Of a stretch of DNA of 64,000 nucleotides, positions 14,704 to 63,403 are shown piece after piece. This DNA is from Euprymna scolopes (lineage: Eukaryota): assembly GCA_053919585.1 (NCBI GenBank), contig CM132816.1. One strand, given 5' to 3'. The notes under the pieces are model-generated. The model was not told where the DNA came from, did no database searches, and saw nothing but the letters and a program-made list of their open reading frames with translations. Numbering within the stretch: position 1 is the stretch's first letter; every line of letters begins with the position of its first letter. A program made the position numbers and the translations under genes.

Positions 14704-15217
14704 AGACATGCAACTCACACACACCAGTACAACATCAAGACATGCAACTCACACACACCAGTACAACATCAAGACATGCAACTCACACACACCAGTACAA
14801 CATCAAGACATGCAACTCACACACACCAGTACAACATCAAGACATGCAACTCACACACACCAGTACAACATCAAGACATGCAACTCACACACACCAGTAC
14901 AACATCAAGACATGCAACTCACACACACCAGTACAACATCAAGACATGCAACTCACATACACCAGTACATCATCAAGACATGCAACTCACACACACCAGT
15001 ACAACATCAAGACATGCAACTCACACACACCAGTACAACATCAAGACATGCAACTCACACACACCAGTACAACATCAAGACATGCAACTCACACACACCA
15101 GTACAACATCAAGACATGCAACTCACACACACCAGTACAACATCAAGACATGCAACTCACACACACCAGTACAACATCAAGACATGCAACTCACACACAC
15201 CAGTACAACATCAAGAC
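14704..15217. repeat. 34-bp minisatellite (agacatgcaactcacacacaccagtacaacatca), about 15 copies
   Basis: Near-identical tandem units; ORF starts offset by 34 nt. Confidence 0.97.
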
Positions 15218-15699
15218 AACACATATCTAAAACCAAAACCTAAGAAAAAACCATGCTCATTATCTAACTGTTTAGATTCTGTCAAGCAAAAAATCTGACT
15301 TTTTATGCTGCCACCTTGAACTCCCAACAGCGCCTAAATTTGCACAATTTGTATTATTCTTGTGTCTGAAGGGTTCCAGGTCCATTCAACACTGCTTCCC
15401 TACAACAGGCACATGCAAACCGTGGTTGCTTATTGTTATGTCTCTGCATACCGTTATTGCATTTGAGGTGAGAATTCTTTGGTGTTGCACTCACTGAATC
15501 AAACAAAAAACGTTTGACTGGCACAAGTGAGACGATCTTGACTAGTGACTGTTCTTAATAATAATAACCTGATATTAATACTGATATTAATACTGATACA
15601 AAAGAAGTCAAAACCTGGGGACTGAATCATCACCAAAAAATATAGGTTGAGACCATTGTCATCCAAAAATCTTCTGTATTTAGTTTTCTCCTTTTTACT

Positions 15700-34271: not shown

Positions 34272-35135
34272 TGTGGTGCCTTCAGTAAGTTTGCAGACTT
34301 TTTTTGCATGGGAAGTAATGTCTTGCAGCTGCAATGCACTTGTTGGAAGGCCCCATGGAAGTCCTCTTTCGTGAGCGTGTCAATGACCCTTGTCACAGCC
34401 TCTAAGGTTTTCCTTAAGCTTAGGGAATAACCAAAAGTTACAAAGGAGCAAGGTCTGGACTATAGGGAGAGTGAGGAACTGTCTTGATGTCCATCTTGGT
34501 CAAATAGTCTGTGACAAGGATGGAGTTCTCTGAGCAACTTCACATAAATCTTCTGCATCTTCAGTTCCTTAGGAATAATTGTGTGTACAGTTCCCAAACT
34601 GACATCAAACTGTGCATTTATTGTCTCTATAGACACACCACAGTCCTTATCCATGAAATTCTTTATTTGACCAATCAACTCCGGTATTCTGATTTCCTTA
34701 CTCCTCCCACATCTCTCATCCCTCATAGACTCCCTGCCTTCCTTGAATCTCTTATACCACTCAAAACCTGATACTTGATTCATGCAAGATGGTCCAAAAA
34801 TAATCTGAAGCATTTTTTTTTACATTTCTGCAGCATTTTTTTTTCAAGTTTAAAACAGAATTTTATTGCATAGTGTTCTTCTAAAGTTCACACAGGAAAC
34901 TCTAGTCCTTTTCAAAATACTCTCACGTATAGATTGCATTTTTGAAATTCACCAGCTGTGACCATCAGGCTTTAGTTGGATGTATTCCAATTCCTGCTGT
35001 AGCTGTCCATTTGAATAGGAATCATAAAAATTGGTCAGTTATCTCATAACGTATAGCAAAAACATACTGAATTTTCAGAAGTCTACGAGAATTTTAATGT
35101 ACAAAAAAGTCTGGAAACTTATTGAAGGAACCGTG
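34272..35135 (-). mobile_element. Mariner element, internally deleted
   Basis: TA-flanked TIRs (gtggtgccttcagtaagtttgcagac / gtctggaaacttattgaaggaaccgtg); HTH remnant FEWYKRFKEGRES. Confidence 0.85.
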
Positions 35136-35339
35136 TACAATGACTAGAAAGGCAATAGATATAAATTGTGAAGAAAAGAACCCTTTATTTAATCTACAGG
35201 GATTTTGTTCAAAATTCCAAATAATATAAATTATCAATTTTCATCTCCAAAATTCAGAAACATAAAAAAATGTAATTTAATGAACACATTTTTAAAATTA
35301 TTTTATTTTAGATTTTTTTAAAAAGATTTTTTTTCTAAT

Positions 35340-36427
35340 TTTTTTTTTTTTTTTACATGGTCATCACCACTTATCAAGGCCAAAAGGCCACTCGAGGATA
35401 AGGGTTAAAGTGTGTACAGTAGAAGTTGAACAATATAGTAATCATTAGTAATGGAAATTCGTTAAATTTGTTAACAAGTGGAATGGCTCATTAAGAACTT
35501 GTTTACGTTAGACTTGAAGACAACCATATTGTAGACAGCTGGAAAGCAGGAAAATGGTAGACAGTTTCACAGGCATGCAGTTCTAAGAAAGAAGTTTTGT
35601 TCATGGAATCTACGTTTAGGTTTAGGCACAAATAAAGAGTGGGGAGAATTATTGATAGTGTTTTCAGCTAGAGGAGTGTTTCTTGTGAAAGTTTGGCGAG
35701 GGGGGACCATAGACTGAAGCTGTTGAACACTTTCCATGAAAATAATGATACAGCAGAGACAAACTTGTAACATCTCTTCTGTGAGACAGAGGTTGCAGGA
35801 AGAGAAAAGGACATCTCCTACGAGGCTACGAAGTCTATTTTGAACTCTATCAAGGCAGGACAAGTCCTTTCTAGCAGCTCCTGCCCAGATGTGGCAACAG
35901 TATTCCATCCTTGGACGTACCTGGCTCTTATATAGATAGAGAATAGCATCAGCAGTGAGATATTTACCGGATCGATAGAAAGATCCCACCATTTTTCCAG
36001 CGGCCTTGGCAACAGATTTGATGTACGTGTTCCATTTAAGATCAGGAGTAAAGGTCAAGCCCAGAAGCTTGTCAAAACTTGAGGCCTCCTGAAGACGAGA
36101 GCCATTCATTTCAATTGATGCCAAATGTGGATTAGAATGTTGATGATGTAAAGAGAGAAGCTTGGTTTTAGATGCATTAAAAGTAACCAGCCACTCCTTT
36201 CCCCATTGTACCACGTGCTCAAGATCAGAGGAGAGAGAATCGGAGAGAACTTGGTCGTTTACTGTCTTAGATGTGTTACCATAGATGGTAATGTCATCAG
36301 CATAAATGTCTACAAATGATGTAAGGATGTGATGTGGAGGATCATTAATGTAGATCAGGAAGAGAGTTGGGCCCAGGATGGACCCCTGAGGGACTCCAGC
36401 ATTAATACTGTGAGCATCGATCATCAT
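35340..36427 (-). mobile_element. CR1/Jockey-group LINE (family A), 5'-truncated, RT C-half to poly-A
   Basis: ORF 35567-36427: GVPQGSILGPTLFLIYIND..YADD..RPRMEYCCHIWAG; 3' UTR and poly-A. Confidence 0.93.
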
Positions 36428-40960: not shown

Positions 40961-43001
40961 GTTTTAGATGCATTATATATTTAGTTTTAGGTGTGGCCAT
41001 GAATTTTGTAAAAGTTTTTACAACCATTATGGACAGTTTATGGACAGTTTTGGGTTTGTGACGGTTGAAGACAGTTGCAAGTTGGGTACAGTCGAACACA
41101 GGCTGTGGCTTGGACCAGATAGAGAGAGGTGACATCAACTAACGAACACAGCCTTGGCAGAACGTAGATGTGGACGTTAGCATGTAGAGGGTTGATGGTG
41201 TCATACGCACACAACTGATATTTCCAGAATGTGTATTTTTTTTTATATACTCGTGAACCTGCCAAGATGAAAGATGACGACACGGCAAGAAGAGAAGATG
41301 ATAGAAACATCATTGGAGTTAGTGATGTTATCAAGTGGGGGAATGTGTGGTTTTACATATCTGCCTTTTTAAAATTTTCAGTCTAAATCTAATATATAAA
41401 GTAGTATTGGTACGATTAATTGAAATCAGGAAGCAGAAAATCAGAACTTTTTGGAAAATCTCATGGAATCAAAAAAATTTGTGCCTAGTATGTGATGCTA
41501 AAAATTATTGAACTTTTTTCTTTGTTTGGGTTATAATCAGGTATGTTTAGAAATTTGGCCTAAAACCGTCAAGTGGTTCTAAAATGGATGATTGATTTAC
41601 AAAAACGTTGCATTAGAAACTGAGCACCCGTACAAATATTTAAATATTGACTTTTTTTTCATTCTTTTGGATAGTCTGGTCGACTAGTGTCTATTTGACA
41701 AAAATCTGCAGAAAAAAATTGGAAAGATAAAAATAAAAAAAATAGAGTGGGGGGCGATTCTTCAGATCTGCCAAAAAAAAAAAAATAAACTCCATAACTA
41801 AATATTTAGAGGTTATAAAAGAATTAGTGTTGGGGGTAAAATATTGGAGTTGGAGTAAAATATTGGAATTGTCCCATCAGTGATGAAAATAAAAGCAGCC
41901 ATTTTCTTAATTCACTTTCTTAGGAAATAATTTATTATAATTTAACTCTTTTAAAAATATTGTACTTACCCATTCTAAAATAGCAACTTGTATTCAACTA
42001 ATTGTTTACTGTAATTCATTTTTAAAGAGTGTTGTTTCAGTATTAAATAGACCCCAAACCAAAACAGAAACCTATCATCAAATATATTTGGTAAATACAC
42101 TGAGTTTGGGGTGATCAATGATGGCCACAAACATTTCTCAAAAATGTGACATCATACGATGCATCACATTGCAAATTCTTTCGTTTAATCCAGTTGAGAT
42201 TCAGCCCATGTTTTTCAATTGTAGGTGTGTCCCTTTTCGTTCTGAGATTCTAATGGATGGCTCTGTTCTTGAAAAATTGACTCGGAAACTTCTTGGTCTT
42301 TTGTTCTCATCAAATCTTTTCTACATTTGATCCTTTGCTCTTTCTGATTCTTGTAAAGTCGGTTCTTTTTATCGCTCTAAACAATTACTAACACATGAGG
42401 CTGTTTTCTATCTCTACAAATCTATTGTATGGTGTATTCTGTCACCAGCCTGCCAAAAAAAACAAAAAAAAACACATGATGAATGAATCAATATAAAAGA
42501 TTGATACATAATCAAGGCCATACATCATTTTTTTTCACAATTTTACAAAATTTTAATCAATCTAAAACTTCTTGGTCTTTCCTTCTCATCAAATCATTCT
42601 TGGAGTCTATACGTTAGATTCATTGCTTTTTCTGCTTCTTGTAAAAAGTGGTTTTCTTTGTTGCTCTAAACATTTACTCACACCTGAGCATATTCTCTAT
42701 CTCTACAAATTTACTATCAGACCATGTATGGCGTATTGTTTTGTTTTTTGCATTTTTGATTTTTCAGGGAGAGCGTAGTTATGGATTGTGTCATCGTTTA
42801 AAATTTTATTTAACAGAGATTTGAAACAATAAACGCTAAAACGGCAAAATAAAAATAAAAAAGAATCGTAAAACATTGACATATTTTTAAACAAACACTA
42901 AAATATTTTTTTTTTACTTTATTAAAATGATAAAATTATCAAAGAATTTTTTTTTATAATGGTAAAACTTTTTATTTTATGAAAAAACATTCCAAACTTA
43001 C

Positions 43002-43100
43002 TGCTCCTGCTACATCGACATCAGCATGTTTGGAAAGTAAGATTTTGATGACATCCGAATGGCCACCCTTGACGGCATGTATCAAAATTGTGTCACCAGC
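43002..43100 (-). pseudogene. Orphan 99-nt ankyrin-repeat exon, KIDINS220/ARMS-like
   Basis: tttttttggcag|AGDTILIHAVKGGHSDVIKILLSKHADVDVAGA|gtaagt; no neighbouring exons seen. Confidence 0.72.
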
Positions 43101-43258
43101 CTGCCAAAAAAAACAAAAAAAAACATGATGAATGAATCAATATAAAAGATTGATACATAATCAAGGCCATACATCATTTTTTTTCACAATTTTACAAAAT
43201 TTTAATCAATTTAAAACTTCTTGGTCTTTCTTTCTCATCAAATCTTTCTTGGAGTCCA

Positions 43259-43533
43259 TGACCTTGCACCCTCTGACTTTCACCTCTTCCCAGCCATGAA
43301 GTTGTTTTTGAAAGGAAAGCGTTTCCCAGATGATGCAGCCTTGATTTCTGAAGTCACGTCATGGTTGGAGGACCAACCTGGGGTGTTCTACAAAAACGGT
43401 CTCCAGAGCTGCATCAAATGATGCGAGAAATGCATAACTCTGGGTGGTTCCTAAGACTAATAACTGTGCCAAGTTTCGTTGCTCTACTGCTATGGGAAGT
43501 GGGTCAGGGGCATTACTTATTGCACACCCCTCG
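43259..43533 (+). mobile_element. Mariner transposase 3' end plus right TIR
   Basis: DLAPSDFHLFPAMK..GKRF motif; ends ttattgcacacccctcg|TA; empty site near 42608. Confidence 0.88.
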
Positions 43534-44256
43534 TACGTTAGATTCATTGCTTTTTCTGCTTCTTGTAAAATCGGTTTTCTTTGTTGCTCCAAACACTTTC
43601 TCACACCTGAGTCTATTGTCTATCTCTACAAATCTACTATCAGACCATGTATGGCATATTGCTGTAATGTAATGTATGGAGTACTGATGTGATGTTTAGA
43701 CTGGTGAATTTCCATCTTATTTGAGGGTTTGTGATGAGGTGCAGAAACGTATCTGTAATTTGATTGGTCCAATCTTTTTTCATCTTTGCAACCTCGCTCA
43801 CTGCTAGTCTCAGTCTTTTCTATAAATACTATTATGTCATGTGTTCTTCAGAATTGTCTAATCTATTATCTGCTTCTTTGTTCCAGCTCATTTGACTTGT
43901 GTTCTACATCAATTCACTACATCAATACCTCGTTATACCTCGTAATATAACTTCCAATTCCAGTAGCTTCTTTCCAAGAACTGCAGACTTGTAGAATTCT
44001 CTTCCTGCTGTTTATTTTTCTCTTACCTATTGACCTTAGTCTTTTCAAGACTAAAGTCAATAGGCATCTCCTTTCATTGCAAAAAATCATCTTTCATTCT
44101 CGTTGGCTCCTTACAGCTATGTGACTTCATGTCTTGTCTGGAGCAATTTCTATTAAAAAATGATCTGACAAAAAAAAAAAAAATTAGTAGATTGTATTTG
44201 ATTTGAGTGCTCAGCATTTATTCAAATAAAAACTTTCTAAATTACATTTCTTTTAA

Positions 44257-44424
<168 letters not shown>

Positions 44425-45692
44425 TGAGATACAAATAGATTGTAATGACTCTTACATATCAGGGACCCTAATAGCAATTAAGTTAACTAATGCAGATTTT
44501 GACAAGAGTCACATTTAGTGCATGTCATGATAATTCAAATCTGCAAAACAGAATCATTCCCAGGGCTAAATCAAAGATGGGTGACATGTAAGATCAAAGC
44601 ACAAACAGCATCGACAAACGAAAGGTATGAGTTGACACGACGAATGATGTCACATTTTTTGAGTTGAAAGAAAGCAAAGATTTTCAAATCAGTCTTTCTG
44701 TGGATGCAGATAAAAGACACATTGCCTGTAATGCTGTAAGAAACTTTCATAATTGTTAAGCACGAAATGTTACTTCAATATTGATGTTTGCATGTCACTC
44801 ATTTCAGTTTATAAGTTAACTAATGAACAAAATAATTAGTTAAGAGAACATTCGTTTTTTTTTTCTCTCTCTCTCTCCTGAGTCAATTCTCTTGAAAATA
44901 AAATCTTGAAGAAAACTCAGCAAACGTCTCCTTGTGTCTTTCCTGCATGAAAAGTAACCACTAGATAAAATGACAACAATGAAAAGAAACAGAAGCCACA
45001 TAAAAAGAAGACTGAGAATAAAAGCGGAATGAGAATAAAAGAGACCCGTGTATAAAATATTTTTTCAAGTTATCTTCAGTTGAAGCAATATTTAGATATG
45101 GCTATGTTGTGTAGTTGTTTCGCAGTAGTGAGATACAAATATGTAGAAATAAAATGGATGAAAATGATTCTCTGCAGATCAACAATAATGAATGATTTAT
45201 CAAACAATTTACAACTGAGAGAATTACTATTAAAATGCAGACGTTTGCTAAGTATTTTTGTTTTAATCTTTTTCAGATCCAAGGATAGATAACCCATGCT
45301 TCCAAATGATTTTGGCAAGAGAAATAACTTTAGTGTACGAGAGTTATTTTCCTTTAAATATAAAACTGTTGAAAGTATTATTAGTATTATTTATTGGCAT
45401 GTAAAAAATAAACTTCAAATCTGAAATATCCACATACAGTAGAAAATGGAATTTTCAATGAAGAGTTTCATTTTCTATAATCACATTGATACACTGATTT
45501 TCATTAGATCACTCTGGTGCAACCAGATCAGGCTCTCTGAAGACACTGGCTTCTTGACCTAAAATTCACCAAACATTAGTGACATTGTGTTTTTGCAAAG
45601 CCAAAATCAAAAACAACAAGCCAAATTTACCAGATGGGCCATTAAATAACCCCAAAAAGGTTGATATACCTTAAACCAACCAAACCAAAAAC

Positions 45693-55582: not shown

Positions 55583-56130
55583 CTGAAAGAAAAAAAAAAT
55601 GTAACACAATTAATGAAGTATGAAAGAAAAAAAAAAATGTAACACAATTAATGAAGTACGAAAGAAAAAAAAAATGTAACACAATTAATGAAGTACGGAA
55701 GAAAAAAAAATGTAACACAATTAATGAAGTACGAAAAAAAAAAAAGTAACACAATTAATGAAGTACGAAAGAAAAAAAAAGTAACACAATTAATGAAGTA
55801 CGAAAGAAAAAAAAAAGTAACACAATTAATGAAGTACGAAAGAAAAAAAAAAGTAACACAATTAATGAAGTACGAAAGAAAAAAAAATGTAACACAATTA
55901 ATGAAGTACGAAAGAAAAAAAAATGTAACACAATTAATGAAGTACGAAAGAAAAAAAAATGTAACACAATTAATGAAGTACGAAAAAAAATGTAACACAA
56001 TTAATGAAGTATGAAAGAAAAAAAAAATGTAACACAATTAATGAAGTACGAAAGAAAAAAATAATGTAACACAATTAATGAAGTATGAAAGAAAAAAATG
56101 TTACATAATTAATGAAGTACGAAAGAAAAA
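55583..56130. repeat. ~36-38-bp minisatellite (gaaagAn-tgtaacacaattaatgaagtac), about 15 copies
   Basis: Tandem units differing in A-run length. Confidence 0.95.
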
Positions 56131-61690: not shown

Positions 61691-63403
61691 GTGGATGAAA
61701 AACGTGAAATATTACCTAGCATCTTAATCGATCACAATGAAAATATTAATAACGACGACAATTACAGTACTTCTGACGAAAATAGTAACCAGACACGTCG
61801 ATACCCAATAAGGGAGCGAAAAAGGCCAGACTTCTTACAAATTGAAAAGATACAACATTATGCTGTTGATTACTGTTATTCGTTGAACAGCGCACCGGAA
61901 AGTTATAATGAGGCAATTAATTCAGAAAATCACCAAGAATGGGAACAAGCTATGGTATCCGAATTGAAAGCTTTATCTGAAAATAACACATACGAAATAG
62001 TGGCCAAACCAACAGATAAAAATATAATTTCTTCATGCTGGGTTTTTTTCCAAAAAAATCACAGCTTCTGGCAGTGAAACTTTGTAAGCAAGATTTGTGG
62101 CAAAAGGTTTTTCACAAATTTCTAGAGTGGAATATTTTGCAACATTTTCACCAATGACAAATTTAATGACAATTAGAATTTTATTACAACTCGCCACTCA
62201 ATACAATTTAAAAATACATCAAATGGATGTAAAAAATGCTTATTTAAATGCTTCGATTGACTGTGAAATCTACATTTACCCTCCAGAGGGATTTAAAATG
62301 AAAAATAAAAATTGGGTGTGGAAACAAAGTGCACACAATTGGAATTTAACACTCAATAATTATTTAATAGAAGAGAAATTCAAACTATGTCCCGTAGATG
62401 CGTGCATGTGTACCAAAAATGTAGGTAATATTGTTGATTTTGTTTTTTTGGGTTGACGATATATTACTTGCCTCAAACTGTGACAACACTTTAAAAGATG
62501 TTAAAAATTAATTAAATAAAAAATTTAAAATGGCCGATCTTGGACGACTGTCATGGTTCCTTGGTATAAAATTTACCTGTGAAAATGAAACTATAATTAT
62601 GAACCAATCACGATACATTGAAAAAATTCTGCTCAAGTTCGGAAAGCAAGATTGTAAGCCACGTTCAACTCCCGTCGAAATGGACAAAAATAAAAATATA
62701 GGGACCGAAACAAAATTCATAGATAACCGAATATACAGGGAAATGGTAGGGAGCCTCATCTACTTGATGACCGCAACAAGGTCTGACATATGTTACACTG
62801 TAACAAAGCTATCTCAAAACTTATCGAAACCGACAATTAAAGACCTTAATCGTGCAAAACAAATCCTTCGTTACCTAAAAGGAACCAAGGAACAATCTTT
62901 AAGATTTTAAAAAATCTACATATCCTCTAAATTTAGAAGGCTTTTCGGATTCAGATTGGGCTAACTCTGAGGATAGAAAGAGTATAGCGGGCTATTGTTT
63001 TAGACTGTCAAAGACTGGACCTATGATCTCTTGGAAAACTAAAAAGCAACAAATTGTTGCCCTTTCTACTTGTGAAGCAGAATATGTGGCTCTTACTCAT
63101 TCCGCGCAGGAGGCAATTTTTCTGAAACCCCTTCTAAAATCTATCTTAAAACCAGATCTAAGTAAAAAACCTATAGTAATTCATTGTGATAATCAGAGCA
63201 GTATCTTATTAGCAAATAATTTTATGATTTATCAAAGGTCGAAGCATATTGATATCAGATATCATTTTATAAGGGATGAAATAAGAAAAAAATCTATTAC
63301 TCTTACTTATGTGACGTCTGAAAATAATATAGCTGATATTTTCACTAAACTTATAAAAAGAATAAAATTAAGACATTTTATAACAGAACGTTTTGGAATC
63401 TAA
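61691..63403 (+). mobile_element. Ty1/Copia pol remnant (RT plus RNase H) with stops and frameshifts
   Basis: ARFVAKGFSQ, IHQMDVKNAYLN, (W)VDD, YREMVGSLIYL, SDSDWA, ISWKTKKQQIVALSTCEAEY, RSKHIDIRYHFIRD, NIADIFTK; no LTR seen. Confidence 0.93.

Follow-up and report, generated by a model that had tools for sequence, protein, structure and literature searches.

A copied ankyrin exon of KIDINS220 in transposon debris within an intron of a SPATA5-like gene of Euprymna scolopes

How did a single, cleanly bounded ankyrin-repeat exon come to lie antisense in an intron of another gene, and is it used there? The question is raised by a 64,000-nucleotide stretch of the Euprymna scolopes genome (hereafter the window), which corresponds to C34:22878001-22942000 in the 5.9-Gb assembly. 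Read on the minus strand, positions 43100..43002 form 99 nt that are free of stop codons, in phase 0/0, and translate as AGDTILIHAVKGGHSDVIKILLSKHADVDVAGA. This translation matches the Pfam family Ank (PF00023) with 28.9 bits (E=1.3e-6), above the curated cut-off of 21.1 bits, and residues 2-30 of its 33 are covered. A six-frame motif scan of the 64-kb window revealed no second ankyrin or KIDINS220-like piece. Likewise, a tblastn search of the window with a KIDINS220 orthologue (P0001) gave a single match, at 43103-43002, corresponding to residues 270-303.

The pseudo-exon is antisense to its host, about 1.2 kb upstream of a host exon in the AAA+ D2 Walker B region. RNA contigs on 44284-44423 have loose ends at both borders, and their reads are host-sense. 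The best PDB matches of exon 44284-44421 are yeast Afg2 and human AFG2A (SPATA5), with E ~2e-30 versus 1e-23 for VCP; another host exon is closer to CDC48/VCP. The host is predicted to be a two-ring AAA+ ATPase of the SPATA5/AFG2A-like type, a name that rests on one exon. The 3' end of the resident LINE lies only ~100-125 bp upstream of the acceptor of this constitutive host exon (44165-44290), and an effect on its splicing is not visible in the RNA examined.

When the whole genome was searched with 42740-43215, one other locus only was returned, C34:24429857-24430550, at 91-93% identity (E=6e-122), along with a short repeat nearby that covers the first 129 nt of the query. The exon is far beyond a chance occurrence, given such a match of exon and flanks to a second place on its chromosome and only three differences in the 99 nt. 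The donor locus is 1.49 Mb away and in the opposite orientation to the copy. It belongs to a gene in which at least 11 ankyrin exons of 99 nt each stand in succession, the collinear row spanning C34:24394678-24436392, with KAP_NTPase exons after them; about 11 N-terminal ankyrin repeats and then a KAP-family P-loop NTPase is the architecture of KIDINS220. Relatives of the donor KAP exon, sought among 1.8 billion representatives, are full-length proteins of 1500-1900 residues. The best match, at 87% identity, is a ‘kinase D-interacting substrate of 220 kDa-like’ protein of Argonauta hians, and the other names are KIDINS220 of amphioxus and of a mammal. The parent exon translates as AGDTILMHAVKGGHSDVVKILLSKHADVDVAGA. 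The exon corresponds to residues 271-303 of the Argonauta protein, its ninth 33-residue repeat, and can be aligned to mammalian KIDINS220 too. Judged by its sequence, we assign the donor gene as the KIDINS220 orthologue.

The initial annotation had described a clean 99-nt phase-0/0 ankyrin exon with splice signals, had found no other ankyrin exon in the window and had likened it to a repeat of KIDINS220. Sequence and Pfam bear out its coordinates and description, motif scan and tblastn agree on its solitude, and the proposed identity proved correct, given the orthologue alignments and a donor gene that carries a KAP NTPase. The genome comparison that it had proposed for 42740-43215 located the donor. 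The copy resembles the ninth repeat of KIDINS220/ARMS in being a 99-nt phase-0/0 exon that aligns to residues ~269-303 of molluscan, amphioxus and mammalian orthologues. A KIDINS220 gene would contain more than one exon in order, spliced into mRNA. In contrast, the window copy represents one exon of at least 18, with neither neighbouring exons nor a KAP NTPase part nor spliced RNA: it is a fragment, neither a gene nor a paralogue.

To define the extent of copying, we compared the full window with 70 kb from the donor gene. Donor-specific homology is confined to 24429682-24430550, and the other matches between window and donor are shared transposons. The main copy, of ~0.67 kb, comprises the ninth ankyrin exon with its intron flanks, which agrees with the earlier view of a captured genomic fragment with its own intron context. 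A second, partial copy of 0.3 kb stops after 10 nt of the exon. The features of both loci are collected in Table 1.

Table 1. Features of the copied exon, its surroundings in the window and the donor gene. Positions are those of the window unless given on C34.
Feature	Position	Strand	Remarks
Copied ankyrin exon (pseudo-exon)	43002..43100	-	from ninth ankyrin exon of KIDINS220
Inherited 3' splice site	43101..43123	-	poly-pyrimidine tract and CAG; T-run shorter than in parent
Inherited 5' splice site	42996..43001	-	GTAAGT, identical to parent
Parent-derived tract 1	42739..43259	-	equals parent 24429813-24430548, without the parent's 196-bp repeat
Parent-derived tract 2	42440..42738	-	equals parent 24429682-24429996, 96% identity
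Resident old LINE X fragment	42175..42439	+	78% to parent's LINE
Mariner remnant, 5'-truncated	43260..43533 (274 bp)	+	last 53 transposase codons and terminal inverted repeat abutting TA
LINE X segment, 130 nt	43534..43663	+	92.8% to parent's LINE versus 80-89% for other copies
Resident old LINE X 3' part	43664..44165	+	ends in short A-run; 70-82% to parent's LINE, the family background
Host exon, AAA+ D2 Walker B region	44290..44423	+	translated from 44284; spliced in RNA
Parent exon	C34:24429986-24430084	+	ninth in row of 99-nt ankyrin exons
Donor 99-nt phase-0 ankyrin exons	C34: 24394678, 24398730, 24404111, 24407858, 24414626, 24417792, 24420316, 24429986, 24431328, 24436294	+	collinear
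Donor KAP-family P-loop NTPase exons	C34:24442826, 24456788	+	PF07693 (90 bits); downstream of ankyrin exons

The copied patch is a mosaic. Tract 1 comprises 47 nt of the 5'-truncated LINE of the parent and the exon together with intron on its upstream and downstream sides; in tract 2, LINE sequence and upstream intron are accompanied by the splice acceptor, and of the exon only the first 10 nt (42449..42440) are present. Both tracts span a junction specific to the donor, where the 5'-truncated LINE meets unique intron, and the LINE family that flanks the patch also adjoins the donor exon. The resident LINE fragment on the low-coordinate side ends at the very LINE coordinate (CAATAC/GAATAC) at which tract 2 starts. 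On the other side, the LINE coordinate of tract 1 is carried on across the mariner remnant into 43534-43663. In this segment, the window has about eight family-like states where tract 2 and the parent have derived states in common, and the segment may be resident rather than copied. At 43663/43664, identity to the LINE of the parent falls from 92.8% to 70.6%. The junctions of the patch share 3-5 nt (ATGG, AAA and ACA/CAAT), and no target-site duplication or poly-A tail is recognisable around it (42175; 44165-44200). The statement that the exon sits inside a broken LINE is roughly right, with LINE sequence at 42175-42439 and 43534-44165 and the mariner remnant at 43260-43533. Some DNA runs of other species contain as much as 0.29 of the words of 42400-43700, a share for which the transposon parts could account.

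The mariner remnant is absent from the parent and is joined to tract 1 via the shared ATGG. A Pfam search of its 53-codon piece and of the open reading frame at 34460-34813 gave no match, and the family was identified only via a fuller copy (PF01359, E=5.9e-24). RNA reads from other mariner copies diverge from the window at 43259 and 43535. The family is young and very abundant, with at least 2060 candidates at 94-97% identity and strong RNA-seq depth on both strands, and some copies (for example L027:1090-1662) retain a 190-residue transposase reading frame with PF01359.

We consider it probable, at about 0.8, that the pseudo-exon is a non-functional, unprocessed one-exon fragment of KIDINS220 that was copied within the chromosome into transposon debris of the host intron, and that it arose as a templated patch. 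We infer the following course of events. The resident LINE would have suffered a break, perhaps where the mariner element lies, and its homologue in the KIDINS220 intron would have served as template for the repair. DNA synthesis would then have overrun that LINE and gone on into the adjoining unique intron and exon of the donor, with two template switches at 3-5 nt microhomologies before the new strand rejoined the resident LINE. Such an event could be classed as a templated insertion, or as ectopic gene conversion that overshot the shared repeat. The product would be a pseudo-exon with neither promoter nor partner exons, transcribed only within the intron RNA of its host.

Patches at double-strand breaks that are templated from distant loci form a described class, the class 2 templated sequence insertions (PMC5110952). 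The window patch resembles them in being short and derived from a distant locus, in the microhomology at its junctions, in the lack of a target-site duplication or poly-A and in having more than one tract from one source. Those described in humans are said to derive from RNA templates and to be largely exonic (PMC5110952). In contrast, the window patch includes intron, its entry was apparently guided by a shared LINE, and its assignment to repair is our interpretation. Pointing against the repair model, two template switches fall at one LINE coordinate, a coincidence for which the model does not account.

Repeated restarts at one coordinate look like the template jumps of a reverse transcriptase, which brings an origin at the RNA level into consideration. 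In this case, the LINE reverse transcriptase would have copied a LINE-sense transcript, antisense to KIDINS220, from the intron into a truncated LINE, by transduction of the 5' flank or by template jumping, and the exon would have been carried unspliced because its splice sites sit on the opposite strand. The position of the copied unique DNA, on the 5' side of a LINE with a normal 3' end and an A-run, and the transfer of the exon with intact intron flanks are compatible with such a course; however, the 3' part of the LINE (43664-44165) is no nearer to the LINE of the donor, at 70-82%, than unrelated copies are, and the LINE of the donor does not have stretches that are present in that of the window. 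Moreover, no target-site duplication was found, and the required antisense donor transcript was not observed. We regard an RNA-level origin as unlikely.

Two further ways in which the LINE might have moved the exon were rejected. LINE-mediated transduction, such as L1 3' transduction, is a route to exon shuffling, and the window shares with it an exon that moved along with an adjacent LINE. L1 3' transduction involves DNA downstream of the 3' end of a LINE on the same strand, poly-A and target-site duplications. In contrast, the copied exon is on the 5' side of the LINE and on the opposite strand, the 3' part of the LINE is not derived from the donor, and there is no poly-A or target-site duplication. 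Duplication of the whole LINE and its flank as one block was discarded on the grounds that the 3' part of the LINE is at background identity and that the donor is without stretches of the window LINE.

Location on one chromosome, 1.49 Mb apart and inverted, is also what would be left by a segmental duplication that had taken in the KIDINS220 region and inverted it within the chromosome, and the copy might be the eroded remnant of such a duplication. Yet at 3-4% divergence the neighbouring sequences should still align, and outside 24429682-24430550 only transposons match. The window holds no further KIDINS220 exon, and homology ends sharply, with microhomology at the ends. A larger duplication is thus very unlikely, and we return to the templated patch as the preferred origin of the copy.

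How old is the patch, and has the exon been under constraint? Copy and parent exon differ at 3 of 99 nt (97% DNA identity): two of the changes are non-synonymous (I/M at position 7 and I/V at position 18) and one is synonymous. The flanks show 16 substitutions in 418 aligned sites, a rate indistinguishable from that of the exon (Fisher p=1.0). Because exon and flanks diverge alike, the exon evolves without sign of constraint; with only three changes, the comparison has low power to detect slower divergence than in the intron or a deficit of non-synonymous changes. At about 3-4% substitutions, the copy is young by sequence divergence, and it is only because of this youth that the reading frame and splice signals are still kept.

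The two replacements can be given a direction. Ile at position 7 and Val at position 18 are nearly universal among orthologues, and by this comparison I7M is derived in the parent, the working gene, and V18I in the copy. The parent codon 7 (C34:24430006) is accordingly ATG for Met, and at 43080 the copy encodes Ile, as in nearly all orthologues. A further difference is the 196-bp stretch found in the parent only, which belongs to a repeat family. Since the copies of this family are 94-98% alike, the repeat entered the parent after copying; a deletion in the copy was rejected in favour of insertion of a young repeat into the parent. At C34:24430157-24430352, the KIDINS220 intron carries this young, probably SINE-like repeat of ~179 bp, for which at least 211 candidates exist, 94-98% identical.

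In several respects, the copy behaves as unprocessed partial pseudogenes and duplicated gene fragments do: it consists of genomic DNA with intron flanks, is intrachromosomal, neutral and unspliced. Unlike them, it is unusually short, at one exon, still fully open and equipped with intact splice signals. The open frame and the intact signals are again explained by the youth of the copy.

Intact signals raise the question of whether the exon is spliced. We compared RNA over 42000-45000, from two raw poly-A runs (X23 and X24, with 12-13% of each run read) and two sets of RNA-library contigs. Three sites on the plus strand distinguish copy from parent (copy/parent: 43026 A/G, 43049 T/C and 43080 T/C). 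At these sites, in the order given, parent letters were found in 9/9, 11/11 and 10/10 raw reads of X23 and in 6/6, 5/5 and 5/5 of X24. The long mRNA contigs, of 5033 nt and 3503 nt, whose ends coincide with the exon borders have the parent letter at each of the three sites as well. Contigs that stop at the exon borders are KIDINS220 mRNA cross-mapping onto the copy. Reads of that mRNA are clipped at the borders of the pseudo-exon and so mimic a spliced antisense exon, and only the letters at 43026, 43049 and 43080 betray their origin.

Copy-type RNA occurs only in short contigs of low depth, record 3 of X1 and records 8 and 9 of X4, at depths of ~5 versus 48 in X1 and ~21 versus 1292 in X4. 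In X1 record 3 and X4 record 9, the exon continues unspliced into the intron, and X4 record 8 covers the downstream flank alone, at low depth. Strand was calibrated internally: KIDINS220 mRNA has its first mate on the plus strand and host exon 44290-44423 on the minus strand. Few reads fall in the flanks of the copy, and most of these have their first mate on the minus strand, which is the orientation of host pre-mRNA. X1 record 3 (42440-42592 and 42915-43090) joins the copy exon to upstream intron sequence that is closer to tract 2 than to tract 1; it could be an allelic variant, the result of gene conversion between the tracts or a chimeric contig.

Across the two raw poly-A runs and the two contig sets, no copy-type RNA was spliced at 43101/43001. 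The initial annotation had called the exon an orphan, and that term holds, with two loci genome-wide, a single exon in the window and no spliced copy-type RNA. It had considered an exon of an overlapping antisense gene less likely and had suggested looking for minus-strand spliced reads at these borders; none of copy type turned up there, no other minus-strand coding exons lie nearby, and we rejected such a gene. It had also spoken of a symmetric exon available for exon shuffling: the phase is indeed symmetric, but the RNA of these runs and contig sets gives no sign of use.

Two readings nonetheless give the exon a role. By the first, exon capture is in progress: repair guided by the repeat delivered a symmetric and splice-competent exon that may be included in some tissue or stage, as part of an antisense RNA or, once a local inversion has occurred, of host mRNA, and that may be polymorphic. 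We rate this as highly improbable. By the second, the exon is already functional: splicing would include it in an antisense transcript or in a rare isoform of the host, as a first step of exon shuffling. Its open frame, its symmetric phase and a splice donor that is intact and identical to that of the parent would suit this reading, as would the presence of the region in RNA libraries at low depth. But raw poly-A reads show no copy-type letters at the diagnostic sites, copy-type contigs are unspliced, flank reads are host-sense, exon and flanks diverge at the same pace and, on the coding strand of the host, the sequence is antisense. We consider a present function extremely improbable.

Finally, the probability that a KIDINS220 read or contig was misplaced into the SPATA5-like intron is negligible: partial duplications in local tandem are places where assemblers tend to err, with nothing specific to indicate an error here, but misassembly is unlikely because the copy has diverged from the parent (~4%, indels and the 196-bp repeat) and because independent RNA-library contigs from other studies (records 3, 8 and 9) carry copy-type letters, reproducing 42738-43090 without the 196-bp insert.

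Other repeats were noted in the window. A second LINE family is present at 35327-36427 on the minus strand, with a 286-residue reverse-transcriptase reading frame (PF00078). Since a copy in the KIDINS220 gene (C34:24424499-24425592) is 93% identical, this family is young. At 14708-15298 on the plus strand, a minisatellite-like tandem repeat has a 102-nt unit in which three overlapping frames are open (MQLTHTSTTSRHATHTHQYNIKTCNSHTPVQHQD repeated). A minisatellite at 55648-56037 is open on both strands, encoding repeated FINCVTFFFLSY and KKVTQLMKYERK. By eye, a string of open reading frames at 61691-63403 on the plus strand resembles copia-type pol (reverse transcriptase/RNase H).

The functional weight of the copied exon is small: it is a neutral gene scrap, an ordinary pseudo-exon from a gene fragment. 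The instance is new, and its kind, a young, neutral and unspliced one-exon gene fragment, is already known. The locus is a trap for annotation, in that cross-mapped KIDINS220 reads could lead a gene predictor or junction caller to invent an antisense gene in the SPATA5-like intron. If exon capture were in progress after all and the copy polymorphic, the first step of exon shuffling would be open to direct study. For the KIDINS220 gene itself, the copy is of value as a record of the ancestral state, keeping at position 7 of the repeat the Ile that has since become Met in the working gene. For the mechanism, it offers a tidy case in which a transposon shared by two loci would have guided how the exon beside it was copied from one to the other.
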